From contig NC_092347.1 in assembly GCF_963676685.1 (NCBI RefSeq), positions 82,460,001 to 82,524,000 on the forward strand: a stretch of 64,000 nucleotides of DNA, written 5' to 3'. The position numbers were made by a program, and so were the translations under genes. Below, one piece after another: positions 29,312-41,452 of the stretch. Each line of letters starts with the position of its first letter. The stretch's first letter is position 1. This stretch comes from Mytilus edulis (taxonomy: Eukaryota). The notes beneath the pieces were generated by a model that did no database searches, had not been told where the DNA came from, and worked only from the letters and a program-made list of their open reading frames with translations.

Positions 29312-29692
29312 ATGGATACTGAAGGTGAGCCAGATATTTCGTTGAGAACTGTCTTAACAGCTGTAAACCAACAGAGTAAAGATATCGAGGCAATTATTGA
29401 CGCCAAAGTTACGGAGAAAATTGGTGGATTAAGAGAAGAGTTGCAAGGGGCCAATCAGTTAATGAAATCCCAGGTCAAGAAACTTAAAACAGACGCTTCC
29501 TATAAATGGAAATACGAAGGTAATAAGATTCAATTTGACTTCAATACTGAAAATCTCGAGGATCTTGTTCAGACTTTGTGGGCTATAGACAATGGGAAGG
29601 TAGATTACGCACGAGATTTGTTATCAGCTACCGTAGATAAAATCAAGCATCGTAACAAGCTGATCAAAATTGCTGACACTTCCGAGGGAGGT
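29312..29692 (+). pseudogene. DIRS gag-like ORF1, 5' part (127 codons), interrupted by Merlin
   Basis: WKYEGNKIQFDFN and RNKLIKIADTSEGG; continues in frame at 39064 as WDTARQY. Confidence 0.9.
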
Positions 29693-29711
29693 GGATCAAG
29701 TATAGAATACG

Positions 29712-30040
29712 TGATTGTAGTACCATCGGACTTATATTTAAGTCAAATGAAGTAAATCGGTTCTTATACAAATTACATAATTGTAGTACCATAGGACTTA
29801 TTTTTAAGTCAAATGAAGTAAATCGGTTTTTATACAAGTTAAATTATTTTCCAGGTTTATTATTTGAAGATTGTAGTTATGTTTAATCGCCATATTAAGT
29901 TGGGATCGACAGGTCGACAGGTCGACAGGCCGACAGGTCGACAGGTCGACAGGCCGACAGGCCGACAGGTCGACAGGCCGACAGGTCTATAGGTCGACAG
30001 CGACATGTCAACAATTAGCTTGATTGACAGTCCGACAAGT
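29712..30040. repeat. Merlin left subterminal repeats: ~62-bp tandem pair and (CGACAGGT/C)n array
   Basis: attgtagtaccat.ggactta... occurs twice; 8-mer array at ~29907-30007. Confidence 0.85.
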
Positions 30041-30301
30041 CGAAAATGTAGCTATTTCTTTTTTTATAATTGTTAAAAGTTTAGGCAAACGGTTCTACAG
30101 ATAAAAAAACATAAGCATCAACACATCCAATAACAGTATAAGCTATATATAGTTTTTCATCTAATATATAAAAGAAGTGATTGTATATTTTATTTGAGAG
30201 GAAAAATTAAATTTCAACAAAACAAAACTCGTCAATTACTATTTCTTTAAGTTTACAGTGGCGCTTTTTAATCCATTTTAGTTCATCTTTTATTGGCCGT
30301 T

Positions 30302-30973
30302 TCATTTTTTTTCATTAAAGATTGCAATGTCCTTTAAAAATTTATGGAAAACGTCTCCATTTGAAAACCCGTATCTGTATCTGTAGCAAAATTCATTTAA
30401 TATGTCACCGATTCTTTCATGTCTCACTCCTTTCATTGATTTGATTTTAAGTTTTGCAAGCCCCCATATGCCTTCAATTTCATTTGTGCAGGTTCCATCT
30501 TGTGCTTTAAATTCTTTACTGTGGTTTACAGTTTTATGCACAAATCCTTCCTTTTCCAATGTGTTATACGCCGCCCAACAATCAGAGTTAATGTGTGCTC
30601 CTTCGGCAACATTTTCCTGAATAATTGGTAACAAGGTCTTACGATCTCTTTTTTCCACTATTTGCAAAATCACTTTCCTTGACCCCTTCTCCACCATTCC
30701 AAAAACCCAGGTATCTTGTTTTCCTGTACCTCTGTGATATTTTCTTTTTTTTCCAAAGAGACTTTCGTCGATTTCAATCAAATGTTCACTGTTTGATCCC
30801 AATAAGACTGGATCATTTGTTAACGATTCCTTACATACTATCCGGAACTGGTCATACCATTCAATAACACTGACATGACTGATATCGGAAAGTTTTTCCA
30901 CTTCGTAAATTTGAAGATCTATTCCAAAGTAGTAAACTAGTTCCATCAGTTTTCGTAGTGGCAGTTTGGACTT
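30302..30973 (-). CDS. Merlin transposase exon 2 (DDE_Tnp_IS1595/ISXO2 catalytic domain, 223 aa)
   Basis: EIDESLFGKKRKYHRG, WVFGMVE, RDRKTLLPII, SDCWAAY, VNHS, TNEIEGIW, LNEFCYR; cag acceptor at 30976-30974 in phase 0. Confidence 0.95.
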   Translation of the reverse strand, partial: KSKLPLRKLMELVYYFGIDLQIYEVEKLSDISHVSVIEWYDQFRIVCKESLTNDPVLLGSNSEHLIEIDESLFGKKRKYHRGTGKQDTWVFGMVEKGSRKVILQIVEKRDRKTLLPIIQENVAEGAHINSDCWAAYNTLEKEGFVHKTVNHSKEFKAQDGTCTNEIEGIWGLAKLKIKSMKGVRHERIGDILNEFCYRYRYGFSNGDVFHKFLKDIAIFNEKK

Positions 30974-31558
30974 CTGAGGGAAAAAAAGAACATGAAAGTG
31001 TGATATTTTTTTAAACTTTGCTGTGTATAACAATTCCCAAATAAAAACATAAGAAATACTGTTACATGAATATGCATTTACTTAATTTTTACATACTGGT
31101 TAACACACTGAATAGCGATGATTACACTGACCATTATGTTTATATCACACAACAAAACGCATAAACAGACTACATGTAAATTTTATTTCACAACCGGTAT
31201 TCAAACCTGACATGCTACTGTTGTATTAGCCTATACATACTGTTAAATAGCGCCAAATAAACTTTTTAGAATATTGCAATCAATATCAAAACTTAAAAAC
31301 TAAACGCCAATTTTAATGGATGGATTATGATAATCTATCTATTTTCGGTTTACTATATTTGGCAAACTATCCACAATGACCGGGTGATGCCCGTCCGTAT
31401 CTTATGTCCCATACTCACTGTACATATAATCAGTTATGTTAACCACAACAAATCCCTTGGAAGATGATTTATTTTTTTATATCAACAACAGATGTAGATA
31501 TGATTGGTTCAATATCCATTAACAATAATTAAATTTTGATAATAATCTTTTTATTTAC

Positions 31559-31696
31559 CTCAAAAATACTACTCCTCCTTATGGAGCTGGTTAACAGGCA
31601 TGCTGGGCATTTCCATTGTAAAGAATCTGAAATGTCTTTCCGTTTACACAAATTCATATCTGAAGCACAATGTGTGCAGGTCATTTCTTTCTTTAA
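31559..31696 (-). CDS. Merlin transposase exon 1, 3' part (Zn ribbon CTHC...WKCPAC...SIRRSSIFE)
   Basis: GAG|gtaaat phase-0 donor gives SIFE-KSKLPL; begins at the TTAA target of the piggyBac-like insertion. Confidence 0.9.
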
Positions 31697-33886
31697 CGAG
31701 TTCTGTGCCACAGGGCCGATTATCGGCCCAAAGTCATACTCCTTTCAGTGCCAAAGGGCCGATTCATCGGCCGATTGTAATGATGTTATGAACTACGTAA
31801 TGTACTATGACGTCGCCGTTTATGTGATAAATTTAATTCCGCCGTGTTGAAACATTCGCGCGTTTTTTACCAAGATTACAAAATATGAAAGGGGAGCTTT
31901 TTTATGAAATTTAGGAAAATAAAATTATGTAAGGATGTATTTATAAATATGTATATAATATTTAAAACTATAGCGTCTCAAATCCACTCTTTTTTCCCGA
32001 CGCTATTGCAGTAGTCATTTAGTGTAGGCCGTTTAGTATATTTATGTTTTATTTACTTTCCTAAACGTGTTAAAGTTTGCAAAAATTCAAAGAACATAAT
32101 ACAAATAAAATTGTACCAACATAAAATATAGAAGATAGAAGTTACTCAAATACCCTTAACAACGAACAGATTAGAAAACGTGCAAAAAAAAAAAAAACCA
32201 AAAAGTACGCAAAAAGTGCACTACACAATAATGACGTAATTAATCTAATGACGTGATTCGTTAACGCATCCGTCGGATTATGGCTAATCCTTATCCGTGG
32301 TTATTCAGTTTATCCTCCTGAGTGAGATCTCACACAAAATTTAACCAGAATCTAGGACATATAAAAGAATACTGCAGAGAAATTTCAAAACCATTGCCTA
32401 TTTCATGCTGATTTCCCCAATTCATTCGACGAAGAAGTTTGTCTTGATAACATACAGTTATGCCCATGTTTCATTAAAACGACATCAGAGAATTTTGATG
32501 CATTGTTTTTGCTGTGTTTAATTTTTCTAGGCTTTATACGGCATACGTTTATAGAAATTTCAAAGTAAAAACACTTAAAACATGAATAATAAATCAATCA
32601 TTATGGGCTGTATACAAGAGATACAAGGAAAGTATTTAATATTGTATTTATCGTGTAAAAATGCCGGATTGTGCCGGCCAAATTAATATTCCAGGTCAAC
32701 ATGACTCTTTTAATTGATACATATGTAACATGTTTCTTAGTAAAATACATGTTCGTTGATCGATGCATGTCTGTACTCATTTATTATTCGTCCCTTCTTC
32801 CAAATAAGAGAAAGAAAAACCACGCACAACCTTAGAACTTTGTGAACAATTAAAAATTCTAAATTACAATTACAGTGACTTATTTTTGTACGGTTGTCAA
32901 GAATTAATGAACACATTATTTTTTATATTAAGATACGATAGAAATTTCCTATTAAAAGAACTCTGACAATGTTAGATCAGGTCTTCATTTTATACAATTA
33001 ATTAACGGTTTTTTTCATGACATTTCGGAAGATCATATAATAAGAACCAAAAAAGGGTGGAAAATTGCCGGTCGAAAAGAAGAGATTGTTCTGTATTATC
33101 TGTACGGAATGTCCTGTTGAAAGGAAAAGACTGAAACATGTATATGCATGTGTGCTCTCTGTCGTAAAGTTGTTCATAAATCATGTAATAAATAGAAGAA
33201 ACACAGCAGACGATGTAACTCTGACGAAAAAAATATCTTTCTTGAGAAATGTTTATATGAATCTTCAATTTTGTATCTCAAGCTCATATAATGAAGTTGT
33301 TCACAAAGAATAATCCCAAACTTTCTTTGATTTATATATAATGACAAATTAATTTGCATTATCTGTTTTCGTATAATACCGAATTTTGACCCTGGAGGTA
33401 TATGATTTAAAAGCCAGGTTTGCTTCTCCGGGAAGGGCATTTGATTTTCTGGTACAGTTGGAGACAGTCAACTGAAAGAAGTAAAGTCAAACTTACAATC
33501 GGTGCAATTATTGTTTCATGGACACATAAAAATAGTTATCCCTACTCAAGGCCCATACCAAAAAATATAGTTTACCTTATTAAGTTGCCCTTTCTAGGAC
33601 CAAGGATTCTTACTATACAAATCCTTGCTAGAACCGGAACCAGAATATCTTATAAAACGTGACTTGTCTAAATATCTAAACTCCGGAATCCAAAATCGGT
33701 AATATATGAAAGAAAATAGACTTTTATTAGAAAAGGTTTAATATTCCCGCCATTTTCAGTTAAAATCTTTTTGGCGCTATTATACTTGTACTATGACGTC
33801 GCCGTTTTTGCGTAATCGTAAAGACAATCAAAAAAAGCATTGGCACTGACGGGGTTTCTTTGAAAATTTATTTGGCAGTGAAAGGG
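31697..33886. mobile_element. piggyBac-like non-autonomous element (2190 bp) inserted in Merlin transposase exon 1
   Basis: TTAA at 31693-31696 and 33887-33890; right end TTTGGCAGTGAAAGGG|TTAA, left end TTAA|CGAGTTCTGTGCCACA (10/16 match) with an internal better copy CCTTTCAGTGCCAAA at 31741; removal gives in-frame DNGL-LKKEMTC. Confidence 0.85.
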
Positions 33887-33890
33887 TTAA

Positions 33891-34001
33891 TAATCCATTA
33901 TCCATCATATAAGGTACTATTGATTCTTGGCTAGAGACTACAGCATACCAATTTATTGCCTTTGGTGCTCGATCTAGTAACGGAATTCCTAAGTTTTCCA
34001 T
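33891..34001 (-). CDS. Merlin transposase exon 1, 5' part (MENLGIPLLDRAPKAINWYAVVSSQESIVPYMMDNGL)
   Basis: ATG at 34001; 37 codons that join 31696 in frame; reconstructed protein 306 aa. Confidence 0.85.
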
Positions 34002-34182
34002 TTTCTTTTTCTATACTAATTTTTAACACAAACTACGTGCACACAAATCAGAAAACTGACTATAAAGGATTTCTCCCAAACAACTTTATGACGTTAAAAA
34101 AAAAGGGAAAATATTCAACAGATTTTCGCGAAACTACATTATGACGTTACGTTATCGCTGTTTTGCTTTGAGACTGCTGAAG
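34002..34182. promoter_or_regulatory. Putative bidirectional promoter between the transposase and ATPase genes
   Basis: 181 bp between divergent ATGs; palindrome TTTCGCGAAA (34124-34133, E2F-like), TGACGT CRE-like sites at ~34089 and 34142, CACGT-type motif near 34035. Confidence 0.55.
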
Positions 34183-35074
34183 ATGGCTGCGGCTTTTAAA
34201 AAGTTCAGAAGCGAGGATATTTTATCCCTTTACAAATCCGCTTACAATACTAAAATTCCTTGGAAAGAAGTATTTGAAGAGGAAACAGAGAATTATTTTT
34301 CTATATTTGAAAAAGCTACAAATTGCTCCCGAAGCCTAGTTTTGTCCAGTGTTTTATCACTAACCTCTACTTTGTGTGGTCCAAATACGAAGGTTACAGT
34401 TGGAGACAACTCATATTCTACCGTGTTAAACCAGTATATCGTTGCAGTATGTGCACCCGGTGGAGGAAAAACCAATACATATTACAAAGTCATTGATCCC
34501 GTGGTGGAAAAAATAAAAGAAAAACATGGAATTGCAATTCAATTGGAGGCTTACACGACAGCAGGTCTCCAGAAACACCAATTAAATAACCAAGGGTATG
34601 GTATCATCACGTGTGATGAAGGACACAGGTTTTTGTCATCTGTAAATGTAAAACAATCGAAGGGTGAAGGCGAGAGATCTCTTTTGTGTAAGATGTGGGG
34701 AGGAAAAGGAGACTCCAGCATCCTAGTAACAGGAACAAGAGGTTTTTCCAAAACATCAATGTCCTGCTGTCTATTTATTCAACCTCAACCATTACTTTCA
34801 GAGTTATGTCAACTTGGTGGAGATGATGGTTTAATGGATCGGTTTCTGTTTTGCGTTGCCAAACCAGTCTTTAATACCACGGCAATTACTAAAGCAAATG
34901 TACCACTATTACGAGACACCAAATTGCAAAGTTTTGAAAATGTCATGAACAACATTTACGAGGAACACTTAGCAGGGAAGCACTACAAGTTGTCCGCAGA
35001 TGCCGAGAGTGTGTTTGATGGTTTGATTGACTCATATTCAGACTACATGAATGCCAAATATGGATCTGACCACG
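34183..35074 (+). CDS. DUF3987/YfjI-like P-loop ATPase, exon 1 (alternative in-frame ATG at 34141)
   Basis: Walker A APGGGKT (34453-34473), Walker B IITCDE (34603-34620), LFIQP, DGLMDRFLF arginine-finger-like motif; CACG|gtaagt phase-1 donor. Confidence 0.85.
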
Positions 35075-35646
35075 GTAAGTAAACAATATAGTCATGAAAA
35101 GAAAGTGAACCGGGGTTAAATTTTCAATATTAATGTCAATATCTTTGTTCAAGATAGCAATATTATATTTATTACAATAGTCAAGAATAAAGTATTTTAC
35201 ATCTGCACCCCCCCTCCATCCCCACCTCCTCCAATGTACACAGAATTTTGAAAAAAAGTTGAAATGTATGAAACCACTGTTTAAGGAAGCGAACCCACTT
35301 TTAATTATTGTATCCGCCCATTCACATTTTTAAAAAGGAGTCTTGATTAAGTCGCAGCATTCAATCACATAGGCAATGATATAATCCATTCTAGTTTTTT
35401 ATTGTTAATCAACCGGTTTTAAACTATTACACAAACATTTTCAATTCATACCAGAATTTTAATTTATTAATCGTTTACATAACTATTGTGGCAGCTTATA
35501 TTTGCTTATAACGTAATAAATGTGCATAACAATATAATCTTAAACACAAAACTTATTTTTATTTTTATATTTTTTCAACATTTATTTAAGTTTGCTCATT
35601 TAAATTTCAAACATAATTTACATTATTCTTTTCGTTGTATTTGCAG

Positions 35647-35894
35647 AGGAAGACAAAGAGAATGAAACTCCTAATCTTAACATATCACTAGATGATAGTG
35701 AAATGATGACAAGTAAAGACACCATTCATATTCTTCGTCTTGCTGCCGTTCTGCATGTATTCCAACACAGTTTCAGTTGTGGATTAAATGATGGGTGCTA
35801 CACACCGACACCATTAGAAATAACCAAATCTAGATTAAAACAAGCAATGGTCTTGTATAATTCATTATCTCAACAAAAATCACTGTTTGTTCAG
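35647..35894 (+). CDS. DUF3987-like ATPase, exon 2
   Basis: ttgcag acceptor, CAG|gttagt donor; phase 1 to 0; SKDTIHILRLAAVLHV and EITKSRLKQA resemble the K....R.A..LH / I......A helices of DUF3987 proteins. Confidence 0.85.
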
Positions 35895-36259
35895 GTTAGT
35901 CAAATCATCCTTAGTCTTAGTAATAACATATCAATGGTCTATGATCACACCTAGCATTTTGTGCATTAATATCAAATTGTAATATCAATTTGAATTTGAT
36001 TATTTAATAAAACATTTCTTCAATTTAGATGACACGCAAATCTTAATACGGAACTGTACCAAAATTATATTAAATTCTTGATAACAAATTATTAAGCCAA
36101 ACCAACGGCAAATTTAAAATCAATTAAATCTATTTGCGAAATAATTATCGCTATATTATAACAGCTCTTTTCAATTAATTTTTTTTTATTAATTTTATGT
36201 AGAATACAAAACATCAAATAAAAAGCTTAAATATTAAGTAAATTAAAACTTTATTACAG

Positions 36260-36422
36260 GCTATTGCTTCATGTGATCGGGACACACCAGCTCTTCATTT
36301 AAAACCAGTGGCAACTTTTAGGGACAGAGTCGCCAAGGCCATGTGCAAATCGTGTGGACCATTTGTTACAATACGACAATTACAAAAACGTCTAAAACGT
36401 TCACTTGCCGAGAACATCAAAA
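36260..36422 (+). CDS. DUF3987-like ATPase, exon 3 (AIASCDRD...GPFVTIRQLQKRLKRSLAENIK)
   Basis: ttacag acceptor, gtaagt donor; 163 bp, phase 0 to 1, no stop; not in the ORF track. Confidence 0.8.
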
Positions 36423-36950
36423 GTAAGTTTCCGTAATTATTAATAATTGTTTAAAATAGTTTCCCTATTGTCAAACAAGTTGTTTCATTGGTAACCCATA
36501 CTGAATACACATCAGCTCCTTCCAATGACGCAAATATACTTAAATACAAGGTAAAATATGCATGTTCACAAGAGAACGCTCCAAAATGTATATTTGTTCA
36601 TGGTATAATTTACGAAATGATGTACGTTTGATACAAAAACTCAATTATTAAACATCTTTTAATGTATTTTTGCGTGGGTTAATGATTGTGGGTTGGGGTT
36701 GGGGTTTTTATAAATATCAACATGTGCGTCACTCAGTATGTCCTTATACTTTGAAAGCACAGATGCTCCTTAAAGACACAAAATTTATGCAATTATAGTA
36801 CATCACCTAGTCATGAGCTTAAAAACAATCAAATAATCAATAGAACATGATTCTCATACTACATACAATAAATTTTACGCATGTCTTTTATCATAATTCT
36901 TCTAATATTTTTATATTACACATTTTAATTATACGCATTATACTTTTTAG

Positions 36951-37216
36951 TTGAACTTGAAATGTTGCAACAAAATGGATTCGGCACATTAAAGACACTC
37001 AAAACCCGCCATGGAAAGCGTAACTTTTTCTTCAAAATACCAGGCAATTGCATCGATATGGAAATTGGTGCACATTCTACAATCATCAAATCGGTGGGAA
37101 TTAATATTGACACATATGAGTCAACATTCAACGACTTATCAACTCTTACTGATGAAGAAAAAAACTTTACTATTCAACATCATCCACATGCAGAGGGAAT
37201 CGAAGGACTGTGGTGA
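36951..37216 (+). CDS. DUF3987-like ATPase, exon 4 (winged-helix-like ELEMLQQNGFGTL...FFFK, stop at 37214-37216)
   Basis: tttttag acceptor in phase 1; total CDS 892+248+163+266 = 1569 nt = 522 aa + stop; AATAAA at ~37481 and 37490. Confidence 0.8.
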
Positions 37217-37629
37217 ATTTATTTGATGACCAAACACACGCATTTTGAAACTAATTGTAATCAATTTAGTATCATTTTTCAAGAAAACATAATTCTCATT
37301 ATATTTGTTTCATATCTCATCTCAACTGAAAACTTTTATTCCTTTAATTTTGTTTTTTCAAACAATCAAAGCGTTCATGGACTGCTAAGTGGTTATGGAT
37401 GAAATAACATTAAACATTTTCATTAGATAAATACATGTACAATTATAATTTTGAGGCTTTACAACGAATACAGTTCTGTGAATAAAATTAATAAAATTTA
37501 TCATGCGAAAGCACATATAATTCAGTGGTTTTAATTTAGTTTAATAGAAAAGTGAAAAGCAATGGTGACTGTTTAAAAAAGAAACTAACACCCATCAAGC
37601 AGTAACACAATACGATACAGTTCAATTGC

Positions 37630-38912
37630 TGACTTGTCGACTTGCTGACTATTTTTATTGAGTACTCAACGCCCCCCTACACAACATCCTGACTTAATGA
37701 CAAATAATCTATGGATAACATGAAACATCTGCTTACCTGTCGACCTGTCGTCCTGCTGACCTGTCGACTTGCTGACCTGTCGACCTGTCTATTTGTATTG
37801 CTGACTATTTTTATTGAGTACTCAACTTCCCCCTACACAACATCCCGACTTAATGACAAATAATCTATGGATAACATGTAACATCTGCTTACCTGTCTAC
37901 CTGTCGTCCTGCTGACCTGTCGACCTGTCTATTTGTATTGCTGACTATTTTTATTGAGTACTCAACTTCCCCCTACACAACATCCTGACTTAATGACAAA
38001 TAATCTATGGATAACATGAAACATCTGCTTACCTGTCTACCTGTCGTCCTGCTGACCTGTCGACCTGTCGACCTGTCTATTTGTATTGCTGACTATTTTT
38101 ATTGAGTACTCAACTTCCCCCTACACAACACCCCGACTTAATGACAAATAATCTATGGATAACATGAAACATCTGCTTACCTGTCTACCTGTCGTCCTGC
38201 TGACCTGTCGACCTGTCGACCTGTCGACCTGTCGACCTGTCTATTTGTATTGCTGACTATTTTTATTGAGTACTCAACTTCCCCCTACACAACATCCTGA
38301 CTTAATGACAAATAATCTATGGATAACATGAAACATCTGCTTACCTGTCTACCTGTCGTCCTGCTGACCTGTCGACCTGTCTATTTGTATTGCTGACTAT
38401 TTTTATTGAGTACTCAACTTCCCCCTACACAACATCCTGACTTAATGACAAATAATCTATGGATAACATGAAACATCTGCTTACCTGTCGACCTGTCGTC
38501 CTGGTGACCTGTCGACCTGTCTACCTGTCGACTATTTTATTGAGTACTCAACTTCCCCCTACACAACATCCTGACTTAATGACAAATAATCTATGGATAA
38601 CATGAAACATCTGCTTACCTGTCGACCTGTCGTCCTGCTGACCTGTCTACCTGCTGACCTGTCGACCTGTCGAATTGCTGACCTGTCTACCTGCTGACCT
38701 GTCGACCTGTCGTCCTGATGACTTGTCGACCTGCTGACCTGTCGACCTGTCTACCCGTCGACCTGCTGACCTGTCTACCTGTCTACCTGCTGACCTGTCT
38801 ACCCGTCGACCTGCTGACCTGTCTCCCTGCTGACCTGTTTACCTGTCTACCTGCTGACAGGTCGACCTGCTGACCTGTCGACCTGCTGACTATTTAATTG
38901 AGTATCCAACAT
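37630..38912. repeat. Merlin right subterminal composite tandem array: 7 units of ~135-165 bp with variable (ACCTGTCG/ACCTGCTG)n tracts
   Basis: actatttttattgagtactcaac at ~37648, 37804, 37944, 38093, 38256, 38396, 38531; long 8-mer tract ~38617-38890, inverted relative to the left array. Confidence 0.9.
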
Positions 38913-39063
38913 ATTTAATGTTTCAGCGAATGAATATTTCGATTATGCCGGAACTAGGCCTTCAGATTGTTGCGCGCCTAAACATATTTAAAGTTTTGGC
39001 GTATGAATATTTCGAATATTGCCGGAACTACTTAAACGTATTCTATACTTGGGCCAGGGAGGT

Positions 39064-39429
39064 TGGGATACCGCTAGGCAATATGATGCTAATCCTATTG
39101 CATCTGACTCCGAGGATGAAGCAAAGATTATCCGAGCTGACAATAGAGCTGTCCGCAAGAAGAAAGGGAAGTCCAAGCAGGTTAGAGGTAATGGTTCCAA
39201 AACTAAGGCTAGTAACCAGTCTCTATTAGGACAGGCTCCCAACTTCGTTCCGCAGCCCTTTCGTGGGCCTCAGCAACCTTGGTTCAATGGAATTCCCCTT
39301 CAGCAAGGTTTCAACGCTGGAAAGATGCAGAGGGGACAATGCTACTCTTGTGGGTCTTACGCACACTACAGGTTCAGCTGTCCATATGTCAACAGCAGTA
39401 AACCAGCAACCCAAACCAGGCCCCAGTGA
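39064..39429 (+). pseudogene. DIRS gag-like ORF1, 3' part (121 aa) with CCHC zinc knuckle
   Basis: WDTARQYDANPIASDSEDEAKI...CYSCGSYAHYRFSC; reconstructed gag 248 aa. Confidence 0.9.
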
Positions 39430-41452
39430 ATTTTTAAAAGATGAGTATTTTAATTATCTTGAACTTTCACATGACAATTTAGTAGATAATCATATTGATG
39501 GCAATTTGACCAATAATTATTTTGAATACGAACTAGGTCAATCTGATATAATTGTGAAAGGTAGACTTAGAAAAAACATTCAATTTTGGATAGATATTGG
39601 TGCTCCTAAATTTATTATAGATACTATTAGACATGGTTTTATTTTACCTTTCTATTCCAATCCTATATCGACTTGTTTATCTAATAATTTATCAGCTTTG
39701 AATAATGCAGATTTTGTAAAATCGGCTATTAACGATTTATTAGCTAGAGGTTTAATTGTGGAGACATTAGATATTCCATTTGTTGTGAATCCTTTAACTG
39801 TTGCTGTTCAGTCAAACAACAAAAAACGGTTAATTTTAGATTTGAGAGAAATTAACAGACATTTATGGAAGCAGAGTGTAAAATTTGAAGATATGCGTAT
39901 TGCAAAACATTATATTAATGCACATTCATATATTTTTAAGTATGATGTTCATTCTGCATATCATAACGTCGATATCTTCCCGCCTCACACTAAATATCTA
40001 GGTTTTGCATGGGAATTAAACGGTGTTAAAAAATATTTCAAATTTCTGGTATTACCGTTTGGTCTCAGTACGGCTTGTTACATATTTACCAAACTAACTA
40101 GACCACTTATTAAAAAGTGGAGAGGAGAAGGCAAGCAGATTATTATGTACTTGGACGATGGGCTTGGTGTACATGATGATAAGGAAGTGTGTACTCAAAT
40201 GTCTATACAGGTTAAAAAAGACATAATTAGTAGCGGTTTTGTACCGAAAGCCGAAAAGTCTATGTGGACACCTACTAAAAATCTAACTTTTTTAGGTACT
40301 CATATTGATACAGATAAAGGCATTTTTACTATCCCTGACAATCGTATTGATAAGATTATGAGTACCATTTCAGATATTGATTTGTGTTTATCCAAAAGTG
40401 GTAAAGTATTTGTAAGGAAGGTAGCTTCCTTGGTAGGACAGATTACATCTACGTCTCCCGTTATAGGCAATATAGTATATTTAATGACTAAACATTTGTC
40501 TATTGACATTAATAGTGTTCATTCATGGAACAGTTATATACATTTATCTGTAGACAGTATTGATCAAATTAATTTTTGGAGGTTTAATTTACATGAAGCC
40601 AATGTTAAACCTTTTAATTGGCAGACTATTGTATATAGTGATGCAAGTAATACGGGTTACGGTGGTTATATCGTGGAAAACCCATATAATATTGCTCATG
40701 GTACGTGGTTAGAATCTGAAGTTTCTACTAGTTCTACATGGAAGGAGTTGACTGCGGTGAAAAATGTATTTTTGTCGCTTATAAACTTTTTAAATGGCAA
40801 GAATGTAAAATGGTTTACTGACAATCAAAATGTTGTTAGCATTGTTAGTAAAGGGAGCACTAAATCAGTTCTGCAAAAGTTAGCTTTAGACATTTTTAGC
40901 ACATGTATTAAACACAATGTTAATATAGATATGGTATGGATCCCACGTACTGAGAACGAGAGAGCTGATTATCTAAGTAGAATTATTGATTCAGATGATT
41001 GGGCTATTTCTGAATTTGTATTTCAGATAGTTGAATCCCTTTGGGGACCTCACGAGGTTGATTGGTTTGCCTCTGACGACAATTTTAAATTGCACGTTTT
41101 TTATTCCAGATTTTGGAATGTGAATTCATCAGGTGTTGATGCGTTCACGGTTGATTGGCGAGGGATCAACGGGTTATTTGTTCCACCTGTTTCTTTGATC
41201 CCACGTGTATTGATGTATATGCGGCAGTGTAAAGCTGTTGGTACTTTAATTTTACCTTACTGGCCCTCTGCCAGTTTTTGGCCAATGCTTTGTCCTTTTG
41301 GTGATGGGTTTATTTCTGAGGTGATAAATTTTATAGATCTTCCTACTTACAAAAATGCTTATGTAGCTGGTAAGAGTAAGAAGGCCATATTTGGCAATGT
41401 TGATTTAACTTTTCGCATGTTAGCATTACGGATGGATTTTTCATCCAGTTAG
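39263..41452 (+). CDS. DIRS pol: reverse transcriptase + RNase H + Dam-methyltransferase-like domain
   Basis: KRLILDLR, LPFGL, YLDD, YSDASNTGYGG, WKEL, TDNQ, NERADYLSR, WGPHEVDWFAS...DAF...PP; overlaps the gag 3' end. Confidence 0.95.
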   Translation: MGLSNLGSMEFPFSKVSTLERCRGDNATLVGLTHTTGSAVHMSTAVNQQPKPGPSEFLKDEYFNYLELSHDNLVDNHIDGNLTNNYFEYELGQSDIIVKGRLRKNIQFWIDIGAPKFIIDTIRHGFILPFYSNPISTCLSNNLSALNNADFVKSAINDLLARGLIVETLDIPFVVNPLTVAVQSNNKKRLILDLREINRHLWKQSVKFEDMRIAKHYINAHSYIFKYDVHSAYHNVDIFPPHTKYLGFAWELNGVKKYFKFLVLPFGLSTACYIFTKLTRPLIKKWRGEGKQIIMYLDDGLGVHDDKEVCTQMSIQVKKDIISSGFVPKAEKSMWTPTKNLTFLGTHIDTDKGIFTIPDNRIDKIMSTISDIDLCLSKSGKVFVRKVASLVGQITSTSPVIGNIVYLMTKHLSIDINSVHSWNSYIHLSVDSIDQINFWRFNLHEANVKPFNWQTIVYSDASNTGYGGYIVENPYNIAHGTWLESEVSTSSTWKELTAVKNVFLSLINFLNGKNVKWFTDNQNVVSIVSKGSTKSVLQKLALDIFSTCIKHNVNIDMVWIPRTENERADYLSRIIDSDDWAISEFVFQIVESLWGPHEVDWFASDDNFKLHVFYSRFWNVNSSGVDAFTVDWRGINGLFVPPVSLIPRVLMYMRQCKAVGTLILPYWPSASFWPMLCPFGDGFISEVINFIDLPTYKNAYVAGKSKKAIFGNVDLTFRMLALRMDFSSS

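Follow-up and report, generated by a model that had tools for sequence, protein, structure and literature searches.

Why should a DNA transposon of an animal carry, next to its transposase gene, a second gene for an ATPase? Eukaryotic cut-and-paste transposons are usually thought to need their transposase alone; ATP-driven partners are known from the bacterial Tn7, Mu and IS21, and helicase accessories from a few Kolobok and Academ lineages only. The question is raised by an element at positions 29693-39055 of a 64,000-nucleotide stretch of the Mytilus edulis genome (contig NC_092347.1, positions 82,460,001 to 82,524,000 of the forward strand; the whole stretch is called the window below). The element is a Merlin DNA transposon of the IS1595/ISXO2 DDE type, and head to head with its transposase gene lies a gene for an AAA+ ATPase of the DUF3987 family. 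We consider it probable that this is a two-gene Merlin with an element-encoded helicase or translocase that assists in a replication- or repair-coupled step of its movement.

The limits of the element are defined by its ends. The left terminal inverted repeat (TIR; 29693-29712, plus strand) begins GGATCAAGTATAGAATACGT (GGATC), and at least 22 left ends in the genome, at 97-100% identity and with flanks that differ between copies, begin their homology exactly at 29693. The right TIR (39036-39055, minus strand) is an inverted copy of the left one with two mismatches (18/20 bp complementary); it reads GGCCC on the minus strand and is identical in two other copies (L051 and L054). Merlin termini typically begin with GG. 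Since the GGATC/GGCCC asymmetry is common to every copy read, we regard it as a trait of the family rather than as decay. The element is flanked by an 8-bp target site duplication (TSD), AGGGAGGT, found identically at 29685-29692 and 39056-39063, and two other copies with both ends in hand are flanked by further 8-bp TSDs (AAATCTTC and GGATTTTC), making three of the three copies testable at both ends; among the full-length copies of this family (family A), the right end was read in the window copy. When the element was excised in silico, the two pieces of a host open reading frame (ORF), beginning at 29312 and 39019, rejoined in frame, and the insertion site proved to be the gag of a DIRS-like retroelement. 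The 20-bp TIRs with GG ends, the 8-bp TSD and the host gag frame restored on removal, all read in a first-pass annotation of the sequence, are thus borne out, and TIRs, TSD and a DDE_Tnp_IS1595 domain together identify the element as a Merlin. The canonical element is about 7.2 kb long, the window copy being longer by a nested insertion of 2.19 kb.

The transposase gene is on the minus strand. Its ORF at 30302-31033 matches the Pfam domain DDE_Tnp_IS1595 (E 5.7e-25, 88.5 bits, cut-off 27), and residues D152, D214 and E250, in the numbering of the public model P0030, are kept in 31 homologues. P0030 has 306 aa and consists of exon 1 (83 aa) and exon 2 (223 aa). In the window, exon 2 (30302-30973) holds the catalytic domain in 223 codons (30305-30973) plus a stop codon, with no stops inside; its acceptor, placed from the sequence, gives the same joint as in P0030. 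The intron (30974-31558), likewise placed from the sequence, is GT..AG, and exon 1 ends (…SIFE) where it does in a second family, family B, described below. Exon 1 contains a CxxC…CxxC motif, a putative zinc ribbon of families A and B that the Pfam zinc-ribbon models detect weakly (E 0.02-0.08). A 306-aa transposase, as first annotated, is therefore real in the family, but in the window copy exon 1 is interrupted by a nested insertion of 2190 bp (31697-33886), a dispersed repeat flanked by a TTAA duplication. The insertion separates a 3' part with this motif (31559-31696) from a 5' part with the start codon at 34001 (33887-34001), leaving the gene in three pieces, not two. It cuts the exon in the window copy only: the sister copies L049 and L050 have the empty site, one sequencing contig skips the insert, and its right end occurs in at least 40 genomic copies at 77-94% identity. 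The insertion has no long ORF of note, and its TTAA target resembles a piggyBac-like preference.

The ATPase gene is on the plus strand and starts 181 bp from the start codon of the transposase gene. The spacer between the two divergent start codons (34002-34182) is presumed to be a shared promoter region, and the same head-to-head layout recurs in family B. Four exons, together 1569 nt or 522 codons plus stop, contain no stops inside and are separated by three introns that are all GT..AG. Exon 1 (34183-35074) is predicted to encode the N-terminal domain and the AAA+ core with Walker A, Walker B, hairpin, IQP and DRF elements; exon 2 (35647-35894) the lid helices of the AAA+ module (DUF3987 profile positions 314-357); exon 3 (36260-36422) the first half of a winged helix; and exon 4, with the stop codon (36951-37216), the rest of the winged helix and a C-terminal tail. 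Reads and contigs of four runs were mapped onto 31500-37300. The junction of intron 1 (35074/35647) is seen in one contig and four raw RNA reads, and that of intron 3 (36422/36951) in two contig sets and two raw reads. The donor of exon 3 at 36422 is thereby confirmed by RNA, and its acceptor is placed by homologues, exon 3 being collinear with those from four phyla. All four exons, including exon 4, align collinearly with proteins of about 500-517 aa from a clam (Mercenaria), a nemertean (Tubulanus) and a sea anemone (Nematostella), as well as with an unnamed one of 515 aa. The alignment favours the exon 3 donor at 36422 over an earlier donor used in the public model P0002, which drops 23 conserved residues. 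The ORFs of all 19 homologues stop where exon 1 ends, so intron 1 is old. Of the four-exon, 522-aa gene first annotated, the coordinates, the GT..AG introns, the absence of stops and the splicing of introns 1 and 3 stand; intron 2, which was not seen spliced, is discussed below.

To describe the protein we used P0002 and natural homologues for full-length analyses and searched the window exons one by one. Exon 1 alone matches DUF3987 (PF13148) with E 1.6e-19 (70.8 bits, cut-off 27), and P0002 matches it across the exon 1/2 junction with E 1.7e-23 (83.9 bits; profile positions 131-356); the first ~120 residues of P0002 gave no match to the DUF3987 Pfam profile. The Walker A (PGGGKT), Walker B (ITCDEG), IQP and DGLMDRF motifs reported initially are all present, and in 19 homologues (36-68% identity) the Walker A GGGK, the Walker B DE, the hairpin arginine, the Q-P pair and the DRF arginine (R220) are invariant.

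A structure model of P0002 built with 44 sequences (mean predicted local distance difference test score, pLDDT, 86) points to MCM proteins. Its top Foldseek matches are all MCM subunits (E from 8e-6), and VIA-align places MCM chains at Z 12.8-14.8 over 250-277 residues, followed by BrxL (Z 13.8), BchI, RavA and ComM (Z 10.6-11.6) and Cch (5dgk; Z 9.3). MuB (Z 6.1) and TnsC (Z 6.0) match at the generic AAA+ level and over the first half of the core alone. In the model a beta-hairpin (residues 189-204) with the invariant arginine inside it stands just before the sensor-1 strand, and we take the DRF arginine to be equivalent to the arginine finger of the MCM SRFD motif. The N-terminal part is a short helical region, fold matches start at about residue 45, and the oligonucleotide-binding (OB) fold and zinc domain of the MCM N terminus was not found in the model; we therefore call the protein MCM-like and not an MCM orthologue. 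The C-terminal domain was modelled on the natural fragment P0128 (50% identical, pLDDT 88), to which exons 3 and 4 of the window are 43% and 52% identical. It has the order H1-b1-H2-H3-b2-b3, and the 50 VIA-align matches listed (Z 6.2-7.5) are without exception winged helices, like those in the Foldseek list. Judged from these models, the product of the ATPase gene is a DUF3987 P-loop AAA+ protein with an MCM-like core and a C-terminal winged helix, as the first-pass annotation had expected; Pfam, Foldseek and VIA-align agree on this, the winged helix being assigned on the homologue.

Relatives of the ATPase were also looked for more widely. A sequence search of the PDB gave no meaningful relative, and motif-based scans of IMG/VR viral contigs and of 185,579 prokaryotic species genomes gave none. 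A metagenome scan yielded two short ATPase loci, too short to hold a partner gene. By language-model features, the nearest large DUF3987 cluster is 94% eukaryotic and commonest in rotifers, a hint of a broader spread among invertebrates than is apparent from the named hits. The public proteins P0001 and P0002, which are identical to window 34141-35079, are labelled RAD54/RAD54L in Mytilus edulis. Pfam finds DUF3987 alone in them and no SNF2 or helicase-C domain, which leaves the label unsupported; in P0001 (537 aa), exon 1 runs on into unrelated sequence.

Is the ATPase gene a part of the transposon? Four full-length copies in the genome bear both genes, and the same four alone have the last ATPase exon with its 3' region and a full transposase. 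In searches of the mussel's own genome no copy was found with a complete transposase and no ATPase. Two copies do have an intact transposase exon 2 and no ATPase, and they share one junction (31267/37648) with 3 bp of microhomology. The edges of the missing segment (31268-37647) show no inverted repeat and no duplication, and the segment includes transposase exon 1. The two copies are therefore internal-deletion derivatives, as are many shorter copies, and these shorter copies are mobilised in trans. That single-gene copies might be the ancestral form is ruled out by the absent transposase exon 1 and by a junction without ends or duplication. The ATPase segment has no termini or TSD of its own, the presence of which the first-pass annotation had named as a refutation of the pairing, and the ATPase gene belongs to the element and is inherited with it. 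One sister copy (G000:C1:85876793-85889557; L048 and L002) spans about 12 kb from its left end to the last ATPase exon, has extra insertions, one of them ~940 bp long at the equivalent of window position 31100, and differs by 7.5% mismatch in the spacer region.

The pairing is not confined to family A. Family B consists of two loci on contig C11 that are 96% identical to each other over 1064 bp, and between the two families nothing could be aligned at the DNA level, the non-coding sequence being unrelated. The terminus of family B is related to that of family A (14/19 positions), its transposase is 40% identical in exon 1 and 56% in exon 2, and between the ATPases identity is 40-44%. Beyond this genome, longest contigs of exactly equal size are shared by seven ATPase and seven transposase homologues (6510, 2193, 2797, 2713, 2087, 3188 and 3105801). 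We estimate the chance expectation of such coincidences at about 0.2, and the contigs of 2-3 kb have room for adjacent genes alone. From pair to pair, the divergence of the ATPase correlates with that of the transposase (Mantel r 0.37, p 0.02). A maximum-likelihood tree of the transposases places every row with evidence of pairing in one clade of 29 rows with 98/98 support, in which sequences from oyster and from Mytilus coruscus are also found. Outside this clade fall six Merlin loci from the mussel genome, none with an ATPase within reach. It appears that an entire clade of Merlin transposases travels with an ATPase gene, and the tree is compatible with a single acquisition at the base of the clade. 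The proposal of a recurrent two-gene Merlin, as opposed to a one-off capture, gains support from the four copies, family B, the seven outside pairs and the one clade.

How does this pairing compare with systems already described? Like Merlin/IS1595 elements (IS1016 and ISXO2 groups), the mussel element has a DDE_Tnp_IS1595 domain, GG termini, an 8-bp TSD and subterminal repeats, to which a candidate zinc ribbon at the N terminus of its transposase may be added (PMC10045372, PMC8101967). Described Merlins are short single-gene elements, with an average of 1635 bp for curated bivalve Merlins (PMC10294476), and a eukaryote-wide Merlin survey reports no helicase or ATPase (PMC8101967), nor is one mentioned for the curated bivalve library; the mussel clade differs from them in its length of ~7.2 kb and in its second, intron-containing gene. 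DUF3987 proteins are MCM-related superfamily 6 helicases with a C-terminal winged helix, usually found beside a primase (PMC4889955, PMC5862659), and one of them, AgaPH, unwinds DNA in the 5'-3' direction in a Walker-dependent manner (PMC11724360). The mussel ATPase shares the Pfam domain, Walker A and B motifs, MCM-related core, winged helix and residence on a mobile element with AgaPH, the dns protein of phage N4 and the YfjI-type proteins of E. coli. In phages and prokaryotic elements, however, DUF3987 is fused to or lies beside a primase (PriCT, AEP or DnaG) and serves the replication of the element, whereas no primase partner is present in the mussel element, whose other content is the transposase and the non-coding nested repeat. 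The mussel gene, which has three introns and sits in an animal genome, is paired with that of a DDE transposase instead.

Two further comparisons bear on the arrangement of the genes. Cch and Cch2 of SCCmec are likewise MCM-like helicases on an integrative element that is moved by a separate recombinase (Cch is the 5dgk match above; PMC7581432), but SCCmec is bacterial, uses serine recombinases and has its helicase together with a primase/polymerase pair. Among eukaryotic DDE elements, KolobokH carries a RecQ helicase and KolobokE, KolobokD and KolobokP carry nucleases, KolobokP being found also in molluscs (PMC9587614); AcademH carries a helicase, as cited in PMC10045372. An accessory helicase in a eukaryotic DDE element is thus not new in general, and the mussel element resembles these lineages in having lineage-specific DNA-processing accessory genes inside TIR/DDE elements of animals and fungi. 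Kolobok and Academ belong to other transposase superfamilies with another helicase class (RecQ in KolobokH), and their accessory genes lie downstream of the transposase domain or on the complementary strand and not as a head-to-head pair. A search of papers, as distinct from the Repbase and Dfam catalogues, found none that connects Merlin with DUF3987 or with another helicase or ATPase, and none that reports DUF3987 in a transposon of eukaryotes, in line with the earlier impression that the pairing is undescribed.

The pairing suggests a DNA-unwinding or copying step in the spread of the element. In the mechanism that we favour, transposase and ATPase would be co-expressed from their divergent genes, and the ATPase would assemble into a ring that, powered by ATP, moves along DNA or unwinds it in a step coupled to transposition. 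Candidates for this step are replication that proceeds through the strand-transfer intermediate, copying of the element's DNA after excision, and the refilling of the donor gap by homology-directed repair. As the element encodes no primase or polymerase, it would depend on host polymerases. The architecture, its recurrence, the fold, and transcription with removal of two introns rest on observation; the ATPase and helicase activities, the oligomeric state and the effect on transposition are what we infer for this protein.

Several observations weigh against such a mechanism. The element encodes no primase, polymerase or origin-binding protein, and a role in replication would need host factors. 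In the reads and contigs of the four runs no splicing of intron 2 (35895-36259) was seen, and RNA contigs of two runs retain this intron; its retention would end the protein 19 codons on and so remove the winged helix. That intron 2 is spliced out is predicted from the gene models P0002 and P0029 and from junction-spanning proteins of relatives (P0128 and P0188). Retention of intron 2 alongside removal of introns 1 and 3 could reflect incomplete data or regulated splicing. The window copy is probably not autonomous, since its transposase gene is split. Comparison of the four full-length copies gave 4 synonymous and 8 non-synonymous changes, which looks nearly neutral and tells little about selection. 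Older, degenerate ATPase copies (L007-L011) have no transposase within the ~1.5 kb of flank available, and the available flanks of L007-L011, L014 and L015 contain no convincing transposase exon 1. Finally, the pairing outside this genome is deduced from equal contig sizes and not from the sequences of the contigs.

The main rival explanation is that the ATPase captures targets or activates the transposase, as do TnsC of Tn7, MuB of Mu and IstB of IS21: bound to target DNA as an ATP-dependent oligomer, it would bring in the DDE transposase or activate it. That bacterial DDE transposases can have AAA+ regulators of their own is established (PMC11208146), and there too the AAA+ protein is encoded beside the transposase on the same element. 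The mussel element differs from these systems in its eukaryotic host and in genes that diverge instead of forming an operon. The mussel ATPase has a gene of its own, in close linkage with that of a DDE transposase, and the two genes seem to be inherited together; the 181 bp between the divergent start codons suggest co-expression, and the winged helix could touch DNA or the transposase. Against this, the mussel protein belongs to a different AAA+ clade from TnsC, MuB and IstB, and the one tested member of its family is a helicase (PMC11724360). The initial annotation had proposed a target selector or regulator, or else a helicase; the fold favours the helicase and leaves the analogy with TnsC, MuB and IstB unsupported (Z 6.0-6.1 against 12.8-14.8 for MCM). 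Prokaryotic IS1595 elements are not known to use an AAA+ partner, which also counts against a regulator. Weakened by the fold, this explanation is the less likely one, and we judge it unlikely.

Alternatively, the ATPase may be a long-lived passenger with no part in transposition, that is a selfish hitch-hiker, a factor that counters host silencing or competing elements, or a gene of benefit to the host that is spread by the element. Deletion derivatives without the ATPase did transpose, other Merlin families of the same genome manage without one, and one of the closest folds, that of BrxL (Z 13.8), belongs to an MCM-like factor of phage restriction. The derivatives, however, lack a complete transposase as well and must have been served in trans anyway, no copy was found that has a complete transposase but no ATPase, and the pairing has been kept across a transposase clade of ~45% divergence with the catalytic motifs invariant. 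We regard a passenger as distinctly unlikely. Very improbable, and largely refuted, is the idea that the ATPase gene is part of a different mobile element inserted into a single-gene Merlin, by nesting or by one-off capture: copies without 31268-37647 exist and the window copy does have one true nested insertion elsewhere, but the segment shows microhomology in place of inverted termini or TSD, copies without it also lack the transposase exon 1 located inside it, and family B has the same layout amid unrelated non-coding sequence.

With a helicase or translocase as the preferred reading of the ATPase, an animal Merlin clade keeps an MCM-like putative helicase of a family documented in the literature surveyed only from phages and prokaryotic islands, with unannotated eukaryotic homologues in databases. 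This bears on how DNA transposons raise their copy number, on whether replicative or repair-coupled transposition exists in animals, and on how a replication module of prokaryotic or viral type entered metazoan mobile DNA. The element offers a compact, testable two-protein system with defined ends, and its analysis corrects the public RAD54/RAD54L mis-annotation in Mytilus edulis.

Both ends of the element carry subterminal repeats. On the left, two 66-bp direct repeats (29714-29848, plus strand; period 66, 2.0 copies, 91% matches) are followed by an array of about 12 units of the octamer TCGACAGG (29906-30000, plus strand), the reverse complement of which builds the arrays at the right end. 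There, tandem arrays (37642-38890, plus strand) consist of ~140-bp units and long runs of the octamer ACCTGTCG, and they are kept in all deletion derivatives. A single octamer is thus present in inverted orientation on both sides (29906-30000 and 37735-38890), its arrays being far longer on the right, inside the ~140-bp higher-order units. These arrays are candidate binding sites for the transposase or the ATPase.

A bolder form of the helicase reading, which we put forward tentatively and hold to be unlikely, would make this clade the first known case of a DDE transposon in eukaryotes that encodes an MCM-like replicative helicase and moves in a replication-coupled way. Sites of loading for the helicase would be the forked strand-transfer intermediate, excised DNA or the octamer arrays, which would then be iteron-like; once loaded, it would recruit host polymerases in the manner of the helicase-initiator of small DNA viruses. 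Regulated retention of intron 2 would, in that case, act as a brake like that of the P element, giving a protein without the winged helix.

Two observations concern the surroundings of these elements. Most degenerate ATPase fragments, both family B loci and many Merlin transposase fragments lie on contig C11 at ~30.0-37.2 Mb (L006, L009-L014, L017, L053 and L055), which may be a repeat-rich or duplicated region. In the window, the DIRS-like host of the Merlin spans 29312-29692 and 39064-41452. Its gag-like ORF is the one split by the Merlin, and the next host ORF has reverse transcriptase and RNase H and a weak match to a Dam-like methyltransferase, a DIRS-like make-up.

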